From contig NW_003314299.1 of the NCBI RefSeq assembly GCF_000143415.4, positions 1,100,063 through 1,164,062 on the forward strand: a stretch of DNA of 64,000 nt, in the 5' to 3' direction. This document shows, piece by piece, positions 1 through 55,002 of this stretch. The number at the start of each line of letters is the position of its first letter. Within the stretch, counting starts at the first letter, position 1. Origin of the DNA: Selaginella moellendorffii (lineage: Eukaryota; Plantae; Lycopodiophyta). Both the position numbers and the translations under genes were made by a program. The notes below the pieces were generated by a model. The model was not told the DNA's origin. It saw only the letters and a list, made by a program, of their open reading frames with translations, and did not search any database.

Positions 1-3000
1 TCAAGTAAACTCAATGATAAAGTTTAACTATTAAAGATTGTAGACAGAATGCCAAACAACTTACGAAAGATAACCCAAAGAACACAAAGTATCATTGACT
101 GGCAAGCAAAATGCTCGCAAATGTATCACTCGGAGGAAATAACATCCCAATCTATCAGAACAAACTTAAGCAATAATCAACAGAATAGAATGAATGTGGT
201 AAGACCAACAAACACTCATTCCTGCCAACTATCACAAAAGCTAATTCGAATAGATCCCAGCCAACAATACCAAGGAACTCAAGTTGCCTAAACAAGTGTC
301 AGCAACATCCTATCGATGTCTCAAACCCAAGTGACCAATCCAGAGCAAACCACAAAAAATATGTGATATTGCGAAAAGCCATAAGCTATCAAAGAAAACA
401 ACTAACTATCATGAAAGATCATCAATCATCCCATCAATGCAGTGATGCATAATCATTGTCAAAGAAGGAATCCACCATCCCGAAAAATGGCAAATCATTC
501 GATATCAACAATAATCAAGCAAAACTCTTGACAAGGATAATCAACTATCTTAGATGATAGTCAATCATCACCAATGATTGCTAGATGCAAAGACTAACGT
601 CAACATCGAAGCTAATGAGCTAAAATGCCTTCCCCCAACAACTCCTAACAAATGGAACAATGAGCATGAAAACTCAAAGAACCAAAAGCTTGAAGAAGTC
701 TATAGCTAAGTCTTGCATAACAATGATCACAAGTCTCGCACGAACTAACTTCAATGCTAAAGAAGAAATCATGGTACAACCCACAATATCCTCCTCAACA
801 CATTCATAAGCTAAACTTCATAATGCAAAGCTAATAAAAAGCATGTCTGCATCAATCCAAAAGCTAAGTATAATGAAGCTATGCTCAACAAGTGATCACC
901 AAATGATCCTCCATGAATCCATCTATAGCAAGACGTAACTTCACTTCATAACAAGCACAAAAAGAATCATCAATGATCGATACATTCTAACTCAAATCCA
1001 ATAAGGATTCAAATATTCCAATACCAATCACTAACTCTCCCACTTGTAGAGTTAGTATAGTCCATGACTGAATCACTTTTCAAGGAAAAGCCAAAGCTCA
1101 ACCTCTACTAAATAATCTCCTCTAGAACACAACTAACTTAACTTGCCATTCAGTTCATTTGAACGTCAACATAATTGCTAACTAGCAAATGCACGAATGC
1201 TAATAACACAAAGCTATAGCCAAATCATCAACACTATCTTTATCAAAACTAATGAAACTCGATATCAATCTTGTAGAGAAACATCCCATTTCACTAAAAT
1301 TTCAATATCAACAATGTCAACGACAAGGCATCACTTCAATGCCATCAACACTAGAACAAAGCTAGAAGAAAGCAAGAGTGAATCACCACTCAAAGCTCTC
1401 TAGCAACCAAGCTAACCAAAGTCGGAGATACTTTACTTAGTATCCGAGACCAATCTCTCAACAATACTCAGTCACAGATAACACTTCCTCAAGGAGTGAA
1501 TCACCACGTCCAAGACTCCATGACATCCAACACTATGAACCAAACGCAACCAAATGATATCAACAGAGGTAGAGTCGACATGTCAACATGGAAAACCCAT
1601 ATAAGTCTAACGACACGATCCTCCGCAACACCATCCGGTAAAGCAAACCCATCACTGCTAAGTCATCATCGAGTGAAGCAAGTGTTAACGGTCCTTGAAA
1701 AAGTCTACAAGCGATCACTAGTCGCAAAGCAACCAACAATCACCTTTCAACTGGCCTTCACAAGACCCAAACACTAAACTCACGTCATCGAGTCATACAC
1801 TTGTCCAACATGAACGTGATACCTCCGGTATGAGATGAAAGTTCATAAACAAGCACAAACCAAATGACCACTCGAATCCAACTCAACTGCGATAAGCTCA
1901 CCAAGGCATTTAGCCAACAGCTCTGAGCATGCCTTGAAGAGGCTAGCTAAGCATGATCAACACTTAGTCGAAACTAAAGTGAAGACCATAAGATGGACTC
2001 ATATCGGTACACAACCTCCTCATAGACAAAGCTACAGTACGGGTACCAACATCTCAAACTCAAACAACTAAGTTGAACATCACCATCCTCAGCCAAGGCG
2101 CAGGGCCACCAAGACCAAGTCAAGATCAGTGAGAGCTCACTACTCTCATAGAGTCTAACGAAATGCAAAGTGCAACTTGCCATTAAGCATAACGCTATAA
2201 AAGAAAGGCACAAGGGTCACCTTTCCAGAAAAGTGCAACGGCCACTTTTCTACACTAACTCCAGACTCTATCCAACTCAATTGCCTTAGCCCCAAAAGTT
2301 AGCATCCCTTTCGGGCCGCATCATACAAATTACCTACTAAAGTCTAAGCCAACCGAAGTCAACTCCAACCCGTTCATTAGTTTGTACTGGCTTACGAAAA
2401 CGGAATGGTTTTCAGACAAAGTGATAATAGATCAGCCATTGGAAAAGTCTAAGAAAATTTGTGGAAAATTTTCCATCCTAGAGAAAGAATGGCTCTCAGT
2501 CCAGGAATGCAAACTTTCAAGACTCAACCAACTTCCTCCTACTTAACAATTTCACATAGGTTCACCTCAACACAAATTCTCGAGATCCATAGTATGCTTA
2601 AGCTTCGAACATCTTTTTGCCCATTCTTCCGACATCCAACATCGACATCCGCCAAAAATGCAAAGTGATCATCCAAGGCTTGATCATGGAGACCATATCT
2701 TCGGATATTCACATTGCACTAACACTCTTCTTCAACCACTTTCAAGATCCAATGTGAAGCTAAAACACTAACAAGAAAAATGACATGGAAAATCAAGCTC
2801 TAAGGAAAATTCCTTATCACTTGAAGTAACAATGCCACTTCCACTAACACAAGTGCTAGTGATGTCAATGCCCCAACTACACATCTTCTCCATCCAACAA
2901 TCTACTCCAAGTGTTAACGGATCAACTAATGAGCTATAGCAACTAAATGCTACAACCCTTTTCCAACACCTTAGTGGGCAAACTCAAGGAAACAAGGAAC

Positions 3001-4257
3001 AACGTACCAACTTAAGCTTAGCATAATGGACCACTATCGAGAATCCTGTCAAAGCTACTACAATGCTACTTCTTGCAAGTAGATTAGCTTCTCCATCAAC
3101 CACTTTGGGGTTGATCATCGTTTAACCAAGCAACTTCGTAAACTCATTGCTCATTATCACATGGATATGATATAAGTATCACAATGACTTGATCATCAAT
3201 TGAGCAACACCACGAACAATGCCAATGTCATTACTTCAAAGGTTCACATGAATATCAAGTGCCAACTCAACTTGACAGAATGCAACATAAATGCCACACT
3301 CTACCGATAGAGATTTACAACACCCAACACCACTAACTTTTGTTCACAACACAGACAAGTTCATGCCACTCACTATCCGATCAAACTCAAAACTTAACCC
3401 AATACCAAGCTACTCAAGGAGCAATAGCTAGGTTCCCCGGAAAAGAATTGAGCATTGTAACCCAAGTCTTCCAATAGCGAGCTTAGACAAAATGGTATAG
3501 CGCTTCATTGCTATCCATCCCATAACTCACCATTTGTAAGACCATCATCTCCAACATGCATCAAGATAGGGACTCTTGATTGCATGATGTGAACACGAGC
3601 AATGAGTCACCCCTCGTTGCAAATCATCCCTCCAAGAAGAGAAGATGATTTACGTGTTTGATCCTTCGTCCCCGACGACTCTCTTTTGGGTCTCATCTTT
3701 GACTACACCTCAAGCTTGCTTTCGCACTGCCTTCAGTCCAATCCAAGAAAAGTTTATGAGAGAGCACGGCAATGACTACCTAAACCAATAGACTAATTCC
3801 TACAGTCTTAGTTGATCCACTTGTAATCATGCCTAGGAAAGATCTACTAGTGCCGTGCTAAACAGCTACGGACCAGCCTATTTGCCACTCATAGCAAACC
3901 CAGGGAAAGTTTGCTTTCACCCACGGTACAAGGAACAACTTATGGAACCACCGATAGGCTAACATTAATCCCGCCAACTCAAAGTGTAACCTCAAGTTGC
4001 TAATGCGCCTCACTCACGAGCCCAAGCTCAAACTCGTGCTAACGGAGCATCTCAAATCCATCCTATGAGCCCAAGAGCAAGCTCACATTATTACGGTACA
4101 AAAAGGTAACCAAAACCATACCCAAGGAACAATTGCAAACCCTTTGCACCAAACGTGTACCCACTCGGATCATCGTTTTCATCTCTGCGTATGCAACGAG
4201 ACTAGTTGCCCAATCTCATTGAATAGTACTCGCTGAGACTCATCCTCTGATACCAAA
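1..4257 (-). mobile_element. Internal region of LTR retrotransposon A (no intact ORF; possibly non-autonomous/LARD-like), running off the window start
   Basis: Lies directly downstream (minus strand) of an LTR and a tRNA-iMet PBS. Strong A/C strand skew, no long ORF in 4.2 kb, and no gag/pol motif recognised. Confidence 0.65.
4245..4255 (-). other. Primer binding site, tRNA-iMet (TGGTATCAGAG)
   Basis: Plus-strand CTCTGATACCA lies 2 nt from the LTR end (TGT at 4258). Confidence 0.9.
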
Positions 4258-17793: not shown

Positions 17794-18122
17794 GTGTGCT
17801 CTGTTTTTAGGGTTCTTCGTAACTTATAAAAAATCGGTTTTTTACCATTTCCAAAACATTTACAATTATCTCTTCTCTCAACGGCAGCAAATCATAGGGG
17901 AAAACCAAAGGAAAATAATGAAAGAGGAATTTACCTGCGAGGCAATTAGAAAAAGAAGGAAGAGATCGGCAGGGGGAGGAGAATTGGGATTTACACTTTG
18001 TGCCATCCAAAGAAGCAAAGGGGGAAAAAACGAAAATTAGCACCCGATTTTAATCGTCGCTCGATCGATCGCAAGAGGGACGCTCCTTCCTTCCATCCAA
18101 CAAGCTGGGCGATCTCCCCTCT

Positions 18123-19274
18123 TCAGTTGATTGCCACCAGCTCGTTCACCCATCCCAGATCGGGGCAATTCTCGCCGCCACACTCGGCCAGATTCTTCGA
18201 CTGATCGAATCGCTGCGCGTAGTACTCGTCGTCGATCGCAGTCCGGCTCCAAATGCTGGGCGATCCCATGCCCAGCGACGGCGAGAGCGATCGCGCGCAG
18301 TCATTCGATCGAAAGAGAGGAGATCTTCCATAGGGCGACGGCGACACGGGCGGGGACGAATATCCCCCAGGCGGCACGGAATATCCCACCCCGGGCTCGT
18401 TGAGTTCCATCTGCCTGTGCAGTGCCGCCACCAGGCTAGCGGCATTGCTAGTGCGCGAATTGAACGACAGCGATTGCCCCAGCAGCCTGGACCGTCGATC
18501 CGCCTCTACCGCCGCGGCGGCGGCGGCGGCCGCCGTGACGTGCGGCATCGACTTCATCCTCTCCAGCGCCGCCGCCACGTGCCGCTGCGGCACCGCGGCG
18601 GCGGCGGCCAGCAGCGCGTGCGCGTCCGCCACCGCCGCGGCATGCGCGATGGACTTGAGCAGCGCGGCGTCCCTCGGCGGCGTGCCGCGCGGCGTACCGC
18701 ACGGCGAGAGCGGCGGCGAGTTGTCCACCGGCGAGAGCGGCGGTGAGGAGGCAGAAGAGATCGAAGAAGCGGAAGACGAAGAAGTGGGCGATGGGAGGCG
18801 CAGCTGCTCGGGCGTGTGCGCGAAGAAGCACACCTTGCGCTTGCAATTCCGGCCGTCCTTGCAGGGCTGGGTGCGGTACCGCGCGGGATGCAGCCAGCAC
18901 TCGAACACGCCGTGCGCCAGATCGCAGCTGTCCCCGTTCTTGCAGCAGCCCTTGCGGAAGTCGGGGCACGACGTGCCCGAGTAGTGGAAGCGGCGGGGAT
19001 CCCTCCGCCGCGCCTTCTCGCCCGGATGCGCAAAGGGGCACTCTGTCCAGTCGTGGCTCCGCCCGCGCATGCACCGCCGGACCTTGAATTCGAACATCCG
19101 GAACTCGTCGCACGCGTAGAGGTGCTCCGGCGACCACGAATCCTCGTTGTTGGAGGGCAGGAATTTGTGGAGCGCCCCCATGCTTGTCGGGCTGTCGCAG
19201 CTCCCGCTGTCGGCCGACACCGATCCAAACGCATTGCCGCCGCTGCCGCCGCCCATCCCTACATGCAGATCCAT
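18123..19274 (-). CDS. Tandem CCCH zinc finger protein (plant RR-TZF family), intronless
   Basis: [36 protein letters not shown], two CCCH fingers and C-terminal [10 protein letters not shown]. Confidence 0.96.
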
Positions 19275-19384
19275 CCCCGCGCTCGAGCTCGCTCGCGCTG
19301 TTCTTCTTCTTGTGTGATCTTCTTCTAATCTACGCTGCCTCCCCTCTCTTCTTCTTTCTTTGCGAGCAAAGCACCGCGCGGTCT

Positions 19385-19497
19385 TCTTATCCGCGCTCTG
19401 CTTATAAACGGATCAAAACCCTTCCCGCTTGACACGTGGCGCGGTGCAGGCCCTCGGATTAAAGAGATCCGTCACACAAATGCCACGGACACGTGGC
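19385..19497 (-). promoter_or_regulatory. TZF promoter: TATA-like box and two identical ABRE/G-boxes (GACACGTGGC)
   Basis: GACACGTGGC at 19431-19440 and 19488-19497, TTTATAAG at ~19401-19408 and CTTATCC at 19385. Confidence 0.6.
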
Positions 19498-20870
19498 GGG
19501 ACGTACCATGTGCGATATGGCCAATCCCACGGCCGCGGATCGTTTTGCAGGTTAACGGCAAGGGGACGTACGCTAACGCCGCTAGTGCCAGACGCGTTAA
19601 CGACCTAGTAGTCAACAAAGCAGCGCCGCGAAGGTTCGAGCGGGCCTTAACGCGGCGTGCCCTAGCCCCAGGTGGGAATCGACCCCGCGACGCGCGACTT
19701 TCTCTTTTTCTTTTGCGGTCACGTTGATGTCGTGTCAAGTTTATAGGCGAGATTCCCCTGGAATCTTGACATTTATATTGGCTTCTTCAAGGTTTGGATT
19801 GGGTAAGCACACATCATCTTTTTTAACTTTCAAGCAGGCCATAGTGGAGAATACTATTGATACTGTGAGCCCCCGTCCCCGTGTCCTTCGCGAAGAAAAA
19901 AAAAAAGAAAACGACCTTGCTCTTAACATTAGTACTATAGCGATTATAATATCTTTTACTTCCTCCACGTAGTGCTTTGGATTTGATGACATCTCCACTT
20001 TGATGAAAGCTTTTACTTTCTATTTCTTTCTTATTCACCGGGTCAAGCTGACCAAACATCTCACATGACCCAGGCGATTAACTTATTCACTTAAAGGTGA
20101 AGGCCCCGCGTTATTCCATCTACTTTAACCGTGTCGCGTTTGTGCGCCACTCGCTAGCTAGCTAGTGCCAAAGTGAATGTTTGGACAAAAAAGTTTCCCC
20201 TTTATTATTTACCCCACACGTCCTTGTTTCCGCTAATGCAATGAACCTTGTATGCCCAATGTATGTCGGCTCATGGTTTGTATTAATCTCGTATAATCCC
20301 ATGTGGCCCTGAGGTTGTTTATATGTTCTATCAGCCTCACGTGCGCGTGGGCACTTATCCGCAACGTTGTCGCGGTGGAATATTCTCCGAGGATATCCTT
20401 ATCCCGGGCCTTGCATGGGGCCCGGGGGCCGGCGTACGGATATCGGTTTCGCGACAACGATAAAAAGTGAGGCCTCGTGACGTGGTTGTGGATAGGCACG
20501 AGGGCGGCCATACCTCCTCATTATTAACAAATATCTTCTTTAATTATGTTCTTATTTTTCCCTCCTGCCCCTTTTTTCTCCTCCTTGCGCATGAAAGAAA
20601 ATCTCATCCATCCAAGCCTGTCGCTCTCGGATTCGATTCGATTTGGTCCCCTGTTCCGGGACCCGCCAGGATCGCTACTACTACCAGGAATATGCTGCTA
20701 CCGGTGATGGAATGTGCGAGGCAGCGGAATATGCTGCTGGCGGAATGTCCTGCGCATGTTTTTGAAAGTTTGAAAGACTTGTGGCGCTAACTGCGGGGAT
20801 GGGCTCCGTTACAAAAAGAGAGTCGACACATTGAATGCCTCGCAGCACCAGATTTTTTGGAGATCGATTC

Positions 20871-44911: not shown

Positions 44912-45057
44912 AGATTCTTGAGGGAAGAAACTGTGAAATAAAAAAGACTTTAAAGGCTGCTTGGATAATTTAGAGGTTCTGTGAAACAAAGGTTATATAT
45001 CCAAATCTTGCTGTGCAGAATGAGATTTATTTTATCAAAATTGTGTGTGCAAAAGCC

Positions 45058-45939
45058 TTAATGAGACTTTGCAAAAGAATAATTAGTTCGTATTGTACAA
45101 AATCTGGTGCGCCAACACCTGAATAAAGAAGCCATAAGATGGATTTTATTCAGGAAAAAAACACTAGCATCCTTCACCCGTTCAACACCCCTCACTCTCG
45201 CACCGCTGGTAAACTTCCGCTTGCAGACGGAACATCTTAGGCGCTGTTGGTCATGCTCCTTGTTGTTAAAGTAATCAAATCTAGTCTCCTGGCCGCAAAA
45301 TATACACGGAACTAGCTTTTCAGTGTCTTGCTTAAACGCCATTGATCTCTTTCTCTTCAGGCTTTTCTCCAAACCGGGCTTGCCCAGCCCAATCGGCACC
45401 CTACAGTCACTCAAAATCTGAGCTTCACGAGGCCTTGGATTAGAAAAACTTGAGCTTTTGAGTGGCACAAGATCATGAAGAACTGCACTGGAAGATGAAG
45501 ATATGTGCATAAAATCATGTAAAACTGGCTGTGAAGTTGAAGATGTTATGTTCTTCCTGTGCATGCTTGAAACCTCCAAATCAGGCAGTGCCCTTAGTTG
45601 GCTGTTCATGTTTGCTATAAGAGCAAAACGATCCTCTTCATCCATTGCAGCAGCACCACCACTAGAACTTTCCTCTGTTTCATCTGATGACAATAACGAC
45701 GACTCCGGCGAGCCCCCAGATCCAGCAATGGCTTCCGGTTTAGCATCAAATCCTCCAGCTTCATCTATACCTAGCGCTTCATCGCGAGTTACGTTTCCTG
45801 TGATTACAGTTTTCACAATTATTGAATCCGTCTCCCTCCCCCTCAAAGATGTAATATGTTTGTGACAACTTTCGAGCGATGGGTGCCAGGTTTCCGTGAG
45901 AAGAATCACACCTCTGGCACCCCGATCATCTGGCCGCAT
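45058..45939 (-). CDS. Atypical Dof-like C4 zinc finger protein, copy 1
   Basis: CIFC-x20-CSVC with TRFDYFNN..Q.R and KFT.G..R, an upstream KRKR NLS and a paralog at 54390-54950. Confidence 0.7.
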   Translation of the reverse strand: MRPDDRGARGVILLTETWHPSLESCHKHITSLRGRETDSIIVKTVITGNVTRDEALGIDEAGGFDAKPEAIAGSGGSPESSLLSSDETEESSSGGAAAMDEEDRFALIANMNSQLRALPDLEVSSMHRKNITSSTSQPVLHDFMHISSSSSAVLHDLVPLKSSSFSNPRPREAQILSDCRVPIGLGKPGLEKSLKRKRSMAFKQDTEKLVPCIFCGQETRFDYFNNKEHDQQRLRCSVCKRKFTSGARVRGVERVKDASVFFLNKIHLMASLFRCWRTRFCTIRTNYSFAKSH

Positions 45940-46246
45940 CTCATCACCTATATAAACTTTTTGGAAACTTTTTGAGTGTAACTAGAAACCTTGGATTCAT
46001 AAGGTCCTAATTATAGTGAAAAAAAAGGAAACATAAGGCCATAAAACCTTTAGGCCAAAACCCAAAACCCTGAATTTTTTGTGTGTGTTTGTTCTTGTTC
46101 GTGTTCTTCGCTGCTTCGCCACTTTTTTTCGTCTTCCCCAAACCAGGTTTTGCTCTTGCAATCTCCATCACTCTAGTGAAACATAGCTGCTGCTCGATGC
46201 CCAGCCACCGGAACCAAAGCACCCCAACACAAAGGATCCCGCTTGT

Positions 46247-46854
46247 CTACTCGTCGACGACGTTGACAAGCTCGTACTCCACAGCGGATAGGTTGTTGTC
46301 TTCCTTGACTGTGAAACTCTCGTCGGCTGCTGGCTCCACCCTTCCCCATTTGTCCACCGCCAAGCGCATGGACCCCTTGAACATGTCGATCTTGGCGTTT
46401 CGGAGGTTTACTGTCACTCCTGGCTTCATTAGATCCACTGCAAAAAATCGAGAAAGAAACAAGGAGTTAGCAATCCAAAGAACTTGCAGACAGATGTAAG
46501 AACGAGACGATCCAAAGAACTTGTAAGAACGAAACTATCCAAAGAACTTGTAAGAATGAAACCATCGCACAAGAGCTAGATCCAATCCAAACAACTTGAG
46601 CGAAGCAAGAAAACCAAGCTGAAAGAACGAGTGAAAATACCTTGTTCGTTCCTGGCAGTGAAGATGATCACTCCAGTGTCATCACCGACGACACACTCCG
46701 CGATTCGGACCTGGCGAACGTTTTGGCCGTCGGGTCTCGCTTTCCTGAGCACCATTTTCGACGAGACCACCTTGACGACGAGCGTGTGCCCGGTGGTGCC
46801 CGGGCGGAGCTGGTCGACCTTGATAAACACGGGCTTTCGCAAGGAAGCGGCCAT
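46247..46854 (-). CDS. OB-fold nucleic acid-binding protein (At4g28440-like), 2 exons
   Basis: LRKPVFIKVDQLRPGT, IAECVVGDDTG and LRNAKIDMFKGSMRLAVDKWG. Confidence 0.92.
46472..46566. repeat. ~27-bp tandem repeat (ATCCAAAGAACTTGTAAGAACGAAACT) x3 in the OB-fold gene intron
   Basis: Three visible ATCCAAAGAACTTG units. Confidence 0.8.
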
Positions 46855-47699
46855 CTACACCACACTCGAGAGCAAAATTTCGCAAAGAACGGCGAATGCG
46901 GCGCTCAATCCTGGGGATCTAGCAGCGAATTTACCTGGACAGCGCCAAGAGATGGATCGATCACCGAGCGAGCGCCACGGACGAAGAAACCCTAACGCGC
47001 AAAATTTCCCTCTCGTGCGTGCCCTAAACGAAGCTTCGAAATGGATTATAAAAAGTGAAATCGGGCCGTTAACTTGCGTGGATTTACCCCTGACAAGGGT
47101 GAAAAAGGCCGTCCGAATATTCTAATCGTATAATTTTGTCATTTTCCCAGAGAGGTAGTGACGCATCAACATCGAAATCTTCTCTCCGTTTGGTAACAGG
47201 TACGTGTCCTTCTCTCTGGCGGCCCACTCCAAGAACCCTAAAAATCTCTGGCCCCATTGGGATGGTGGGAGAGGGGAGATTTTCACGGTAGCTCGCAATG
47301 CCACCAGCAGCGAGGGGGTCCACATGGAATTCGGGTAGAGATGCTCCCATCGATCGCTCGATCGGCATAAACAAAATGGAATGGAAGGTTGCTCGCTGTC
47401 TACTTCAAGAAGGTTAGGTTCTTGCGCGCCTCGCCCAGGGATATTTCTTGCCTTGAGCACGCAGATTTCCAGCGAGCAGCGCAGCGCCAGCGCCAGAGAG
47501 CCAATGCCGGCAGATTCTTAGCTTGCAAGGCCTCCTTGCGAGAGATTGCGGTCGATTCCAGGCGCCGGTAAGTGAATTGGCAGGGATTTCGGTTGTTCTT
47601 GGCGATATTTCGAGCGGATCTCACGATCTTTGGCAGCTGTCGGCGAGATTTGGGACCTGGAACACCGGCATCGAGAGAATCCCGCGATAATCCACCTCC

Positions 47700-48644
47700 A
47701 TGGCTCTGTTCCCGTCGCCAAATCCCAAGAACAAGCCGTCCTGGAAGCTCCTCCCGATTCTCATCCTCGTCGTCTTCTCCCTCGCCTTCTTACTCTTCCG
47801 CGACGCTAGCAATCCCTCGCAATCCCTCGCATCTTCTTCTTCTTCTTCTTCCTCCTCCTCTCCCTCCTCGCAGATCGTCCTCGTCCCCGTGAAGAACACA
47901 ATCTCGGTCCCAATGACGGTGGAGCGCCTCCCGCACGATCTCATGACCGCGCTCGTCCACTACGCCTCCACCGACACGACGCCACAGCAGACCCGCGAGG
48001 AGATCCTCATGACCGCCAAGGTCCTCGCCAGCCGCGGCCCTTGCAACTTCCTCGTCTTCGGGCTTGGCCACGATAGCCTCCTCTGGAAGATGCTCAACTA
48101 CGCCGGAAGAACAGTGTTCCTGGAGGAGTCCGAGGATTGGATCCGGCAGATCAGCGAGAAACATCCGGAGCTAGAGACCCATATCGTGGAGTACAGCACA
48201 GTTCTCACCGAGGCCGATCAGCTGCTAGAACACGCTCGATCCAATCGAAAGGGGAAGTGTACTGCCGTCCAGAATTTGCTACTCTCCGAGTGTAAGCTCG
48301 CGCTCAATGGGCTGGCGGACGAGCTCTTCCAGGTGGAGTGGGATGTGATCATGGTGGACGCGCCGCGCGGGTATTTCCCCGGCGCGCCCGGGAGGATGGC
48401 GGCGATCTTCAGCGCGGCGGTGATGGCGCGGAGCCGCAAGACTGGGAATGGGACGGATGTGTTCGTGCACGATGTGGAGCGCCCCGTGGAGCGCAGCTAC
48501 TCGGAGGAGTTTTTGTGCCGGGAGAATTTGGTGGAGGAATCGGTGACGAGCCATCTGTGGCATTTTAGGGTTCTTCCCAGCCCCGTGGGCAGGCACGAGT
48601 TTTGCGTTGCATCGTCTTCCTCGGGGGGATCTCCCGCCAATTGA
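47700..48644 (+). CDS. DUF579 polysaccharide O-methyltransferase (GXM/AGM/IRX15 family), intronless
   Basis: N-terminal TM anchor, PCNFLVFGLGHDS, WDVIMVDAP.GY..APGRM and DVFVHDV. Confidence 0.93.
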   Translation: MALFPSPNPKNKPSWKLLPILILVVFSLAFLLFRDASNPSQSLASSSSSSSSSSPSSQIVLVPVKNTISVPMTVERLPHDLMTALVHYASTDTTPQQTREEILMTAKVLASRGPCNFLVFGLGHDSLLWKMLNYAGRTVFLEESEDWIRQISEKHPELETHIVEYSTVLTEADQLLEHARSNRKGKCTAVQNLLLSECKLALNGLADELFQVEWDVIMVDAPRGYFPGAPGRMAAIFSAAVMARSRKTGNGTDVFVHDVERPVERSYSEEFLCRENLVEESVTSHLWHFRVLPSPVGRHEFCVASSSSGGSPAN

Positions 48645-48841
48645 GCTCGTGTGATCTTTCCTCCTTTCTAGAGAAATTTAGGGTTCTTCCAAAGGGCATT
48701 TCTCGATGCTATGATTTGTCGCATTTTTTTTATCAATCGTGCGCGCGTCTTCTCGACGAGAGAGCTAGATCTTCCTAGGACGAATCTTTCTTAAAGATAC
48801 CTTCTTCCCCTAGGACAATATTTTAGGGCTCTAGCGCGGCA

Positions 48842-52983
<4,142 letters not shown>

Positions 52984-53054
52984 AGCAAGGTTCGCTTTGT
53001 TCTGTAAACTAGATTTGTTTCTGACTCAATGTTTAGGGGTTTGCAGCTTCCACA

Positions 53055-53896
53055 ATGGCAGCAGCATGTCCTTGCGCTTCCGTCTCCCGGCCTGGAATGC
53101 TCTCGAGCATGGGTTTTCTCAGAAATCAATGCTATCAGCTCCAGAAGAGAGTGGCATTTCCCGCAAGAAGCTGGACACGCAGATTGGCTACTGTCGCATA
53201 TATGGAGAATTCGAGCAGCAACCCAGTCGCCAAGCTCGTTAGTTCACTCCCTATCGTGGGTCTGTTCATGAGGATACTCAGTGACGAAGGTGGAATAGGA
53301 GGTGATAGAGTGGATTTTCCGGACTTTTACACAAGGGTGCAGAAGAGATGTCCGGAGGACGCGTCAGGAGCGTTCGCTCGTTTTGTAGAGCGCCACGGCA
53401 AGGTAGATTTTTACTTCGCAACTAAGAACTCATTTTTTTTCCCTTTCTTCTTCCAGGTAGCGAAGCCAATGTTCGTGCTTGTTTGGTGCTGGGTAGCTGC
53501 AGTCGGCGCTGGTCTCCTTAAAAGTGAGGACATTGCAATGGCGGCTTCTCGTCTCAGAGTTTCTTACGACGTCCAGTACGAGGTCGACTGCTTTGGCCTT
53601 CTCATGGACGAAGCTCTACAGGTTCGGGAGCATCTCTGTCTTCACAGTTTCGTAATCTCACGCAGCTTGTTTTCGTTTAGAAACGAAGAAAGTCTAATTC
53701 ACCAGTTCCGGACGTGCCAATGATCACACGGATCGATAAAGCTCTAGACGGGATTTGTGCGTGCTCCATCGGGACAAAAAAAATCTCCAAGGAGGACGCT
53801 GAGCTGCTCTCCAAGATGATGTCGGCAGTCTTTCCGGGAGTCCCAGCACGCGAGATTGATGAGCTCGTCGAAACTCGAGTGTCCAGTGCAAGCTGA
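53055..53896 (+). CDS. PSA3: Photosystem I assembly factor PSA3-like, 3 exons
   Basis: Transit peptide, SSLPIVGLFMRILSDEGG and CWVAAVGAGLLKSE. Confidence 0.85.
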
Positions 53897-54389
53897 GCGA
53901 ACAAAACTAGAGGTACTTTTGATTTTTACACTATTATAATTTTTTTGCTCTCGCAGCACAGCTTGAGATCTCCGCTACTCACTTAATCCTTGATGTGTTT
54001 ACTTTCTCAAGGATTTTCTTGGGAACTAAGAGATGTTTCTCGATTTTAGTCTTGCAAAGCTGAGAGATTGAAGATCCTTTGCTTCTCAAGCGTTGTTTGG
54101 CTTTCCAGGTCTCTCAGCTTTGACGAGAAAACTGTCCCTGCGATTTCGTCGCTAAACAGGTTCGCAAAGCTTTCCTCGTTTTCTTTGCTTAAAGGTCACG
54201 CCATTCCTCTACAGGGAAATGCCATGCTTTGTACAAACGTCCTCTTCTACAAGAGCCTTCTCCTCCAAGACCAATGGCGAAAGCCAAGAACCACCGAGAG
54301 GGAAGTTGGAAAGCTAGCGAAAAACCAAGAACCTCCGAGAAAGGGGAAAAAATGGAAAAGGTAAATTTACACATTGCATTGATCGAAGC

Positions 54390-54950
54390 TCACGACTTTG
54401 GATCCATGGCGTGGAGCTTGGCCAGCCTCTTGCGCTCCTCCCCGCGCAGCTTGGCGCCGGGAGTGAACTTCCTCTTGCACCTCAAGCAGCGCCGCCGCGG
54501 TTGATCGTGCCGGTGATTGTTAAAGTAGTCGAATCGCGTCGCGGATCCACAAAAGATGCATGCCACCGCTGCCGGATCATCCCTGCGCCTCAAATCGCTG
54601 GCCGGAGGAGGAGGAGGAGGAGGAAGAGGAGGGCGAGGCAAATCCTCCGCGCTCGCTGGAGAAGTCACTGCGCTGCTCGATCCCAGAGGCGCTCCGGCAA
54701 ACCCCAGCGTGAGCCATGGTTTCTTGCCGCCAAGGTCGGGAGCGCCAGTGTCTCGAGACGAGGACGACGATGACGACCTCTCGCAGCTCGCGCTCGCGCT
54801 CGTCGATGGGCTCCCGCCCTTGCAGAGCGCGAGGCCCAGATCGAGCTCCTCCCCCGGACGATCCTTGTGATCTTGGGCGATCAAAGTCGCGATTTGGAGC
54901 TCTAGCTTGCGGAGGAGAGTGGTGTCCTGGTGGCGGCGATGATCATCCAT
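54390..54950 (-). CDS. Atypical Dof-like C4 zinc finger protein with EAR motif, copy 2 (intronless)
   Basis: LDLGLAL EAR motif, PWLTLG, poly-Pro and C-terminal CIFC-x20-CLRC. A TATA box (CTATATAAA, minus strand) lies ~60 nt upstream. Confidence 0.75.
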   Translation of the reverse strand: MDDHRRHQDTTLLRKLELQIATLIAQDHKDRPGEELDLGLALCKGGSPSTSASASCERSSSSSSSRDTGAPDLGGKKPWLTLGFAGAPLGSSSAVTSPASAEDLPRPPLPPPPPPPASDLRRRDDPAAVACIFCGSATRFDYFNNHRHDQPRRRCLRCKRKFTPGAKLRGEERKRLAKLHAMDPKS

Positions 54951-55002
54951 GGAAGAGAAGAAGAGAGGAAAAGGAAGAGAAAAAAGCAATGCATTACTTT
55001 AG

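Follow-up and report, generated by a model that had tools for sequence, protein, structure and literature searches.

The Dof proteins are the closest described relatives of the genes reported here. A spacing of CX2C-X21-CX2C between the zinc-binding Cys residues is described in the literature as the hallmark of the family (for example PMC7076670), and mutagenesis of CDF2 revealed that K166, R170, Y171 and W172 are required for binding to DNA (AAAG) (PMC9477738). As for the lycophyte Selaginella moellendorffii, a survey published in 2024 counted 37 Dof homologs, of which 34 were left after filtering and 25 fell into no group (PMC10842470, Table S4). Divergent Dofs of Selaginella have already been collected by surveys, though not characterised. 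Our literature search found no description of individual Selaginella Dofs or of a Dof type with CIFC as its first Cys pair or with only 20 residues between the two pairs (x20), and no paper on 'SmDof' or on the Protein Data Bank (PDB) entry 8xuf. A second group of described proteins is relevant here, the EAR-motif repressors that recruit TOPLESS; these include domain I of Aux/IAA proteins, NINJA, and the CDFs, which act via an N-terminal motif.

Here we describe two minus-strand genes, A and B, in a stretch of 64,000 nucleotides (the window) of the S. moellendorffii scaffold GL377603.1 (GCA_000143415.2), and a third locus that is situated on a different scaffold of the same genome. The single-exon IRX15-like protein encoded at positions 47700-48641 of the window was traced to GL377603.1 by exact look-up, and 20,945 bases retrieved around it agreed with the window at every position (0 mismatches). 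The three encode Dof-like fingers which we refer to as the CIFC type. In our reading, to which we assign a probability of roughly 0.6, they form a small Dof subfamily known so far from Selaginella alone, and the products of gene B and the third locus are small EAR-type repressors with altered specificity.

Results

Similarity between genes A and B

An earlier note on this DNA had pointed out two minus-strand open reading frames (ORFs) that share one domain of 43 residues and nothing else obvious. Both ORFs are present at the coordinates listed in Table 1, and both 43-residue strings are exact. The fingers were identical at 31 of 43 positions when counted by hand, and at 28 of 39 when the first 39 residues were counted by script. 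When the whole ORFs were compared by BLASTP, significant similarity (37 of 67 residues identical, E = 3e-16) was restricted to one segment, which corresponded to the finger with the short tail at its C-terminal side (L.K[IL]H.M) and extended no further. At the DNA level, the match was confined to 73 bp of the finger region (68%). The two genes thus have only this segment in common, yet B shares further motifs with the third locus, as described below. A weak tblastn match of the finger at positions 2036-2119 of the window was also obtained and rejected as a chance match; the translated region is rich in proline and arginine, is interrupted by stop codons and contains no cysteines.

Relationship of the finger to the Dof family

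The fingers were scored against the Pfam profile Zn_ribbon_Dof (PF02701), a check that the earlier note had proposed. A (39.2 bits) and B (41.8 bits) were both above the gathering cut-off of 26.6 bits, and so was the third locus, with 45.5 and 45.1 bits for its alleles. The matches of A and B span only profile positions 3-47 of 59. In the alignment, all four Cys residues (CX2C...CX2C) are invariant in A, B and both third-locus alleles. For comparison, a canonical Dof from rice (P0006) scored 107 bits, a partial Selaginella protein of intermediate character (P0009) 92 bits, and a single finger from Diphasiastrum, of a kind that we call FT-type, 59 bits, with the CIFC type of A, B and the third locus at 39-46 bits.

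When PDB sequences were searched, CDF1 (8xuf) was retrieved with an E value of 5e-5 and a one-residue gap straight after the first CxxC. Residues 118-186 of gene B were then modelled with AlphaFold2 from an alignment of 17 rows. The model displayed two strands and a C-terminal helix, and the predicted local distance difference test (pLDDT) score was 86-90 in the core. Its best match in the PDB was 8xuf_C (probability 1.00, template modelling (TM) score 0.73 by target, root-mean-square deviation 1.9 Å over 45 columns, 38% identity), a comparison between a predicted model and the solved structure entitled 'CDF1 Dof domain in palindromic-bound complex with DNA duplex'. All 30 of the best matches among the AlphaFold models of Swiss-Prot were Dofs, with proteins from Arabidopsis, rice and maize among them; these align to model residues 1-53, leaving the tail helix outside the match. 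As the Pfam scores lie above the cut-off and the modelled fold matches those of CDF1 and other Dofs, we judge that the CIFC finger is a diverged Dof homolog with a predicted Dof fold, and no separate family. The same scores and fold matches speak against the proposal in the earlier note of a family lying outside, or sister to, the Dofs. Features from the ESM Atlas also pointed to Dof clusters, with a score of only 0.81, which we regard as a lead and not as evidence.

Departures from canonical Dofs

What the CIFC type has in common with canonical Dofs is a single Cys4 zinc ribbon, the core F.Y(F/Y)NN....QPR..C..C and a disordered remainder. Several of the ways in which it differs had been listed in the earlier note (spacing, CPRC to CIFC, YW to KF, and the position of the finger within the protein), and the alignment confirmed them. 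All three loci have x20 between the Cys pairs, so that none of them displays the hallmark CX2C-X21-CX2C, while the spacing is x21 in 8xuf and in all 11 other proteins that we collected (P0002-P0006, P0008, P0009 and cluster members); in P0010 it is x22/x23. Relative to 8xuf, P0006 and P0008, the residue missing from the CIFC type lies just after the first CxxC. Where canonical Dofs have CPRC, KFCY and the signature CK.C.RYWT.GG, the CIFC type has CIFC, RFDY and C(L/S).CK(R/K)KFT.GA, respectively. The canonical extension RNVPVGGG.RK (profile positions ~46-59) is replaced by a modelled helix, ERK.LA.LH.M, and the finger is situated near the C-terminus, unlike in canonical Dofs.

We also examined the positions that correspond to the DNA-binding residues of CDF2. 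At K166, R170, Y171 and W172, the alignment places L/S, R/K, K and F in the CIFC type, and only the R170 position is kept. With one of the four residues retained, the DNA specificity of the CIFC type has probably been changed or weakened. The finger domain is strongly basic, with an isoelectric point (pI) of 10.9 in B, in which 15 of 54 residues are Lys or Arg, and 9.6 in A.

The third locus

An exhaustive phmmer (HMMER) scan of 1.84 billion representative proteins with A as the query gave 10 matches in all. The best was P0001, a protein of 172 residues from S. moellendorffii, with P0011 (XP_024541845.1) as its allele. Although the genes for P0001 and P0011 are on separate scaffolds, they have identical sets of neighbours (SDR, BAH-PHD, SET, PPR, PPR and ICL) and flanks that are 97.2% identical, and we therefore consider them to be two haplotype alleles of one third locus. 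The alleles (L001:5001-5519 and L003:5001-5597) differ by in-frame duplications, including a repeated AEPDLS, and encode 172 and 198 residues, respectively. Neither the scaffold nor the neighbours are those of genes A and B. The locus consists of a single exon, and its finger has the CIFC pair, the x20 spacing and the tail as in B (ACIFCGG..RFDYYNN...QPRFRCLKCKKKFTPGASLRGAQRKKLAELHRM); identity with B is 56% over 77 residues (E = 8e-29). RefSeq names P0011 'dof zinc finger protein DOF1.3-like'. This name is misleading, as it implies orthology with Arabidopsis DOF1.3 for which our analysis provides no evidence. Taken together with the 37 homologs, 25 of them 'ungrouped', in the 2024 survey (PMC10842470), the fact that the locus bears a Dof name in RefSeq argues against the suggestion of the earlier note that such fingers may have been missed by Dof family surveys.

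The proteins encoded by B and the third locus have a common order of elements, an EAR-like DL.L.L motif, WL.LG, a basic patch and the finger. At the place that LDLGLAL occupies in the protein order of B, the third locus has DLSLTL, and DWLRLG corresponds to PWLTLG of B; outside these two motifs, the third-locus N-terminus could not be aligned with B. Both motifs appeared in that order in none of 200,000 shuffles of the third-locus N-terminus, although the motifs had been chosen after they were seen. We consider the motif order to be supportive, but not decisive. The shared DLxLxL and WLxLG motifs suggest that the proteins of B and the third locus are repressors.

Wider relatives and distribution

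The other phmmer matches were two canonical Dofs, the partial Selaginella intermediate and x21 fingers of the FT-type. The intermediate, P0009 (SELMODRAFT_29567; CPRC..TRFDYYNN..QPRFACRACKKQWTQGG), is intermediate between the CIFC type and canonical Dofs. Like the former, it possesses RFDYYNN, but it retains x21 as well as W and GG (QWTQGG). The FT-type fingers are those of P0005 from Diphasiastrum complanatum (KAJ7555101.1) and of the metagenome or transcriptome contigs P0002-P0004, P0007 and P0010, a lycophyte origin being established for P0005 only. As in the CIFC type, the W of YWT is replaced by F (..FT.GG) and the RNVPVGGG extension is absent. In the finger tree, FT-type rows stand closest to the CIFC clade, a placement that is weakly supported. 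Unlike the CIFC type, they have x21, mostly CP.C, often two or three fingers per protein, and no L.K.H.M tail, and they score ~55-60 bits per finger against the Pfam Dof profile. P0003, P0004, P0007 and P0010 (locus L004:1958-3898) carry two or three tandem fingers of this type (QPRY.C..C..FT.GG) under the IMG name 'transposase-like protein'. Judging by its split exons for ACBP and an aldo-keto reductase, contig L004 is apparently eukaryotic. On D. complanatum CM055096.1 (L005:8001-8693), there are several near-identical single-finger FT-type genes annotated as 'hypothetical protein' (KAJ7555099-101, KAJ7555200-201).

A maximum-likelihood tree was built from 17 fingers over 49 columns and included very few canonical Dofs. 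In it, the fingers of the three CIFC-type loci grouped together with a support of 94/79, and the remainder was poorly resolved. The CIFC/x20 type was not found outside S. moellendorffii in the HMMER scan of 1.84 billion representatives. Of the two origins offered in the earlier note, a lineage-specific family or an ancient sister family, this favours the former. A word-index protein search with whole B gave no match, probably because it was swamped by low-complexity words, and one with the B finger gave seven candidates and no match while missing the known relative P0001, so neither is evidence of absence. A search with P0001 found its own allele only. A metagenome scan with the CIFC-type alignment gave 124 pattern matches, none of which was confirmed; plants are scarce in that material and the result is weak evidence.

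Selection and transcription

The proportions of synonymous (pS) and nonsynonymous (pN) differences were compared over 54 aligned codons of the finger and tail. Between A and B, pS was 0.93 and pN 0.24, and the ratio of nonsynonymous to synonymous rates (dN/dS) was not estimable due to saturation. Between B and the third locus, pS was 0.74, pN 0.21-0.22 and dN/dS ~0.07, and between the two alleles of the third locus, pS was 0.093, pN 0.023 and dN/dS 0.24. Over the between-locus finger comparisons, pS was 0.74-1.0 (saturated) and pN 0.21-0.30; dS was not estimable for pairs including A, with pS > 0.75. Saturated synonymous sites together with a pN of ~0.2-0.3 indicate old duplications and purifying selection on the finger in each of the three lineages. 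The earlier note had proposed both paralogy and purifying selection on the finger, and the comparison of A and B agrees with it on both counts, the two genes being old paralogues.

In 7 studies, 16 runs labelled as RNA had contigs that contained the words of a 581-bp stretch of gene B at a share of 0.74-1.00, and we conclude that gene B is transcribed. As for gene A, depth was 0 across positions 44937-45937 in two deep raw RNA-seq runs in which the adjacent OB-fold gene was covered ~100x. Two RNA-labelled contig runs contained short pieces only (45481-45700 and 45755-45931, depth 4-14), none over the finger, and one gene A contig carries an in-frame 3-nt insertion. Expression of gene A was therefore absent or very low in the samples examined. 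The RNA-seq check that the earlier note had suggested was thus positive for gene B, with contigs of 16 runs, and negative for gene A, with no reads over the finger in two deep runs.

Layout of the genes and their surroundings

The features of the two genes are listed in Table 1. Genes A and B are both absent from the gene list of GCA_000143415.2 and neither had a match of its own in any search, so both appear to be unannotated; an exact look-up of protein records with the gene B protein also gave no entry. A TATA-like element is present ~65 nt upstream of the gene B ATG. In gene A, an alternative start at M99 (ATG at 45645, internal MDEEDR) would give a protein of 195 residues. The frame is open for 98 codons upstream of MDEEDR, and an open stretch of 97 codons arose in only 0.3% of shuffles. 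The gene A finger has QQR in place of QPR, and its tail LNKIHLM contains a 6-residue insertion. An intron at the 3' end of gene A was ruled out, because the tail aligns in frame with LAKLHAM and LAELHRM when this insertion is allowed.

Table 1. Features of genes A and B; positions refer to the window.
Feature	Position	Strand	Details
Gene A, CIFC-type Dof-like protein, 293 aa	45058-45939	minus	Intact ORF
Gene A, Dof-type Cys4 zinc ribbon and tail LNKIHLM	45133-45312	minus	C212-C215, C236-C239, x20
Gene B, single-exon coding sequence, CIFC-type Dof-like protein, 186 aa	54390-54950	minus	ORF; first ATG at 54950; frame 54390-54989 if counted from TTG
Gene B, Dof-type Cys4 zinc ribbon and basic helical tail ending LAKLHAM	54405-54566	minus	C131-C134, C155-C158, x20
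Gene B, EAR-like motif LDLGLAL, residues 36-42	54825-54845	minus	From sequence
Gene B, PWLTLG motif, residues 78-83	54702-54719	minus	From sequence

The neighbours are ordinary host genes, encoding an aldo-keto reductase, an OB-fold protein, an IRX15-like protein (single exon, 47700-48641), a DEAH helicase and NSUN2. An annotated gene for a protein of 224 residues with no Pfam family is situated at 53109-53896, between the helicase gene and gene B. In the OB-fold gene adjoining gene A, RNA reads showed ~50% alternative bases at 46292, 46403, 46678 and 46759, indicating that both of its haplotypes are expressed in the sequenced plants, and its 203-nt intron contains a 27-nt tandem duplication (46495-46548, 93% identical). 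Elsewhere in the window, positions 1-4000 display a strong strand asymmetry (GC skew -0.28, AT skew +0.3) and positions 18001-20000 form a GC-rich block (0.605).

Discussion

Each CIFC-type protein is short and mostly disordered, with a basic patch, a Cys4 ribbon of predicted Dof fold near the C-terminus and a basic helix. We propose that the proteins of B and the third locus act as small transcriptional repressors, presumably in the nucleus. Each protein would be directed by its zinc ribbon and basic tail either to DNA itself or to some other factor bound there, and co-repressors of the TOPLESS type would be recruited via the EAR motif. The proposed arrangement resembles that of the EAR-motif repressors mentioned above, in that B and the third locus likewise have an N-terminal DLxLxL, followed by a second L.L motif. 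Like those repressors, they are short and disordered with a single domain of a DNA-binding type. Canonical CDFs differ in having another N-terminal motif, IKLFG, which we observed in P0006 and P0008. Gene A would be either a narrowly expressed paralogue or one that is losing its function.

Several points weigh against this reading. EAR-like LxLxL strings are short and common, and gene A, at zero depth in the two deep RNA-seq runs while its neighbour was well covered, possesses neither the EAR-like nor the WLxLG motif. The RNA evidence for gene B consists of assembled contigs only, and the RNA labels of the runs are in part guessed ('RNA?'). With 17 fingers, 49 columns and few canonical Dofs in the tree, the place of the CIFC type among Dofs is poorly resolved, and its absence from other lycophytes was judged from collections of predicted proteins only. 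Finally, DNA binding may be absent altogether, an objection to which we return below.

A more far-reaching view, which we hold only tentatively, is that the CIFC/x20 type is a functionally new, Dof-derived class limited to Selaginella. Its altered surface (YW to KF, K to L, a shorter loop and a new helix) would read a motif other than AAAG, or no DNA, and in combination with the EAR motif would make a dedicated repressor or an anti-Dof module. The class would also be the visible portion of a wide radiation among the Dof-like fingers of lycophytes that has yet to be described; 25 of the 34 S. moellendorffii homologs are 'ungrouped', and FT-type and multi-finger forms exist.

It is rather unlikely, in our estimate, that the fingers no longer bind DNA and that the proteins are small microProtein-like decoys or adaptors, which bind Dofs or other factors via the ribbon and to which B and the third locus add a co-repressor. 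Dof domains also mediate protein-protein contacts. In CDF2 numbering, three of the four residues required for DNA binding have changed (K166 to L/S, Y171 to K and W172 to F), and a residue is missing from the loop that follows the first CxxC. With these changes, the finger may be unable to bind DNA; the proteins are, moreover, short (172-198 residues) and have no other recognised domain. On the other hand, the strongly basic finger and tail fit nucleic-acid binding, as does the retention of an aromatic residue as F and of R170 as R/K. Long-term purifying selection on the same surface positions is compatible with decoys and with DNA-binding proteins alike.

We regard it as more doubtful still that gene A, and perhaps gene B too, is a decaying relic whose frame has stayed open by chance. 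The absence of both genes from the deposited annotation is in line with this. Gene A, in addition to its zero depth, no longer has the proline of QPR or either of the N-terminal motifs, and its tail has gained the 6-residue insertion. However, both frames are intact, with the long open stretch before M99 of A being rare in shuffles, and a finger pN of 0.24 with saturated pS implies selection during most of the time since duplication. Gene B is also widespread in RNA assemblies, and short, low-depth contigs of gene A did occur in two RNA-labelled runs, the indel in one of them keeping the frame.

That the genes are pieces or cargo of transposable elements and the finger a transposase-type ribbon, which the earlier note had named as an outcome that would overturn its proposal, is highly improbable and was rejected for the window. 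In its favour are the IMG name of some distant multi-finger relatives and, for some relatives, weak matches to the zinc ribbon of the IS1595 transposase (17 bits, below the cut-off of 25.4). Against it, there are no terminal or flanking direct or inverted repeats around A or B beyond low-complexity matches, each of the two genes occupies a narrow gap flanked by ordinary host genes, and the haplotypes are syntenic at the third locus. Moreover, 10 matches among 1.84 billion representatives do not make a multi-copy family, A and B match no transposase family even at E values up to 10, and paralogues saturated at synonymous sites cannot reflect a recent spread.

Returning to a small Selaginella subfamily with repressor members, its wider significance is modest, as neither the fold nor the family is new, the type comes from one species and its function is only predicted. 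The analysis adds two unannotated genes to the genome of a model lycophyte. The CX2CX21CX2C spacing and the YW pair have been treated as invariant marks of Dofs, and the CIFC clade has been kept by selection without them. As a natural experiment, it allows one to ask which portions of the Dof domain DNA recognition depends on, and it may illustrate a possible route to repressor or decoy forms.

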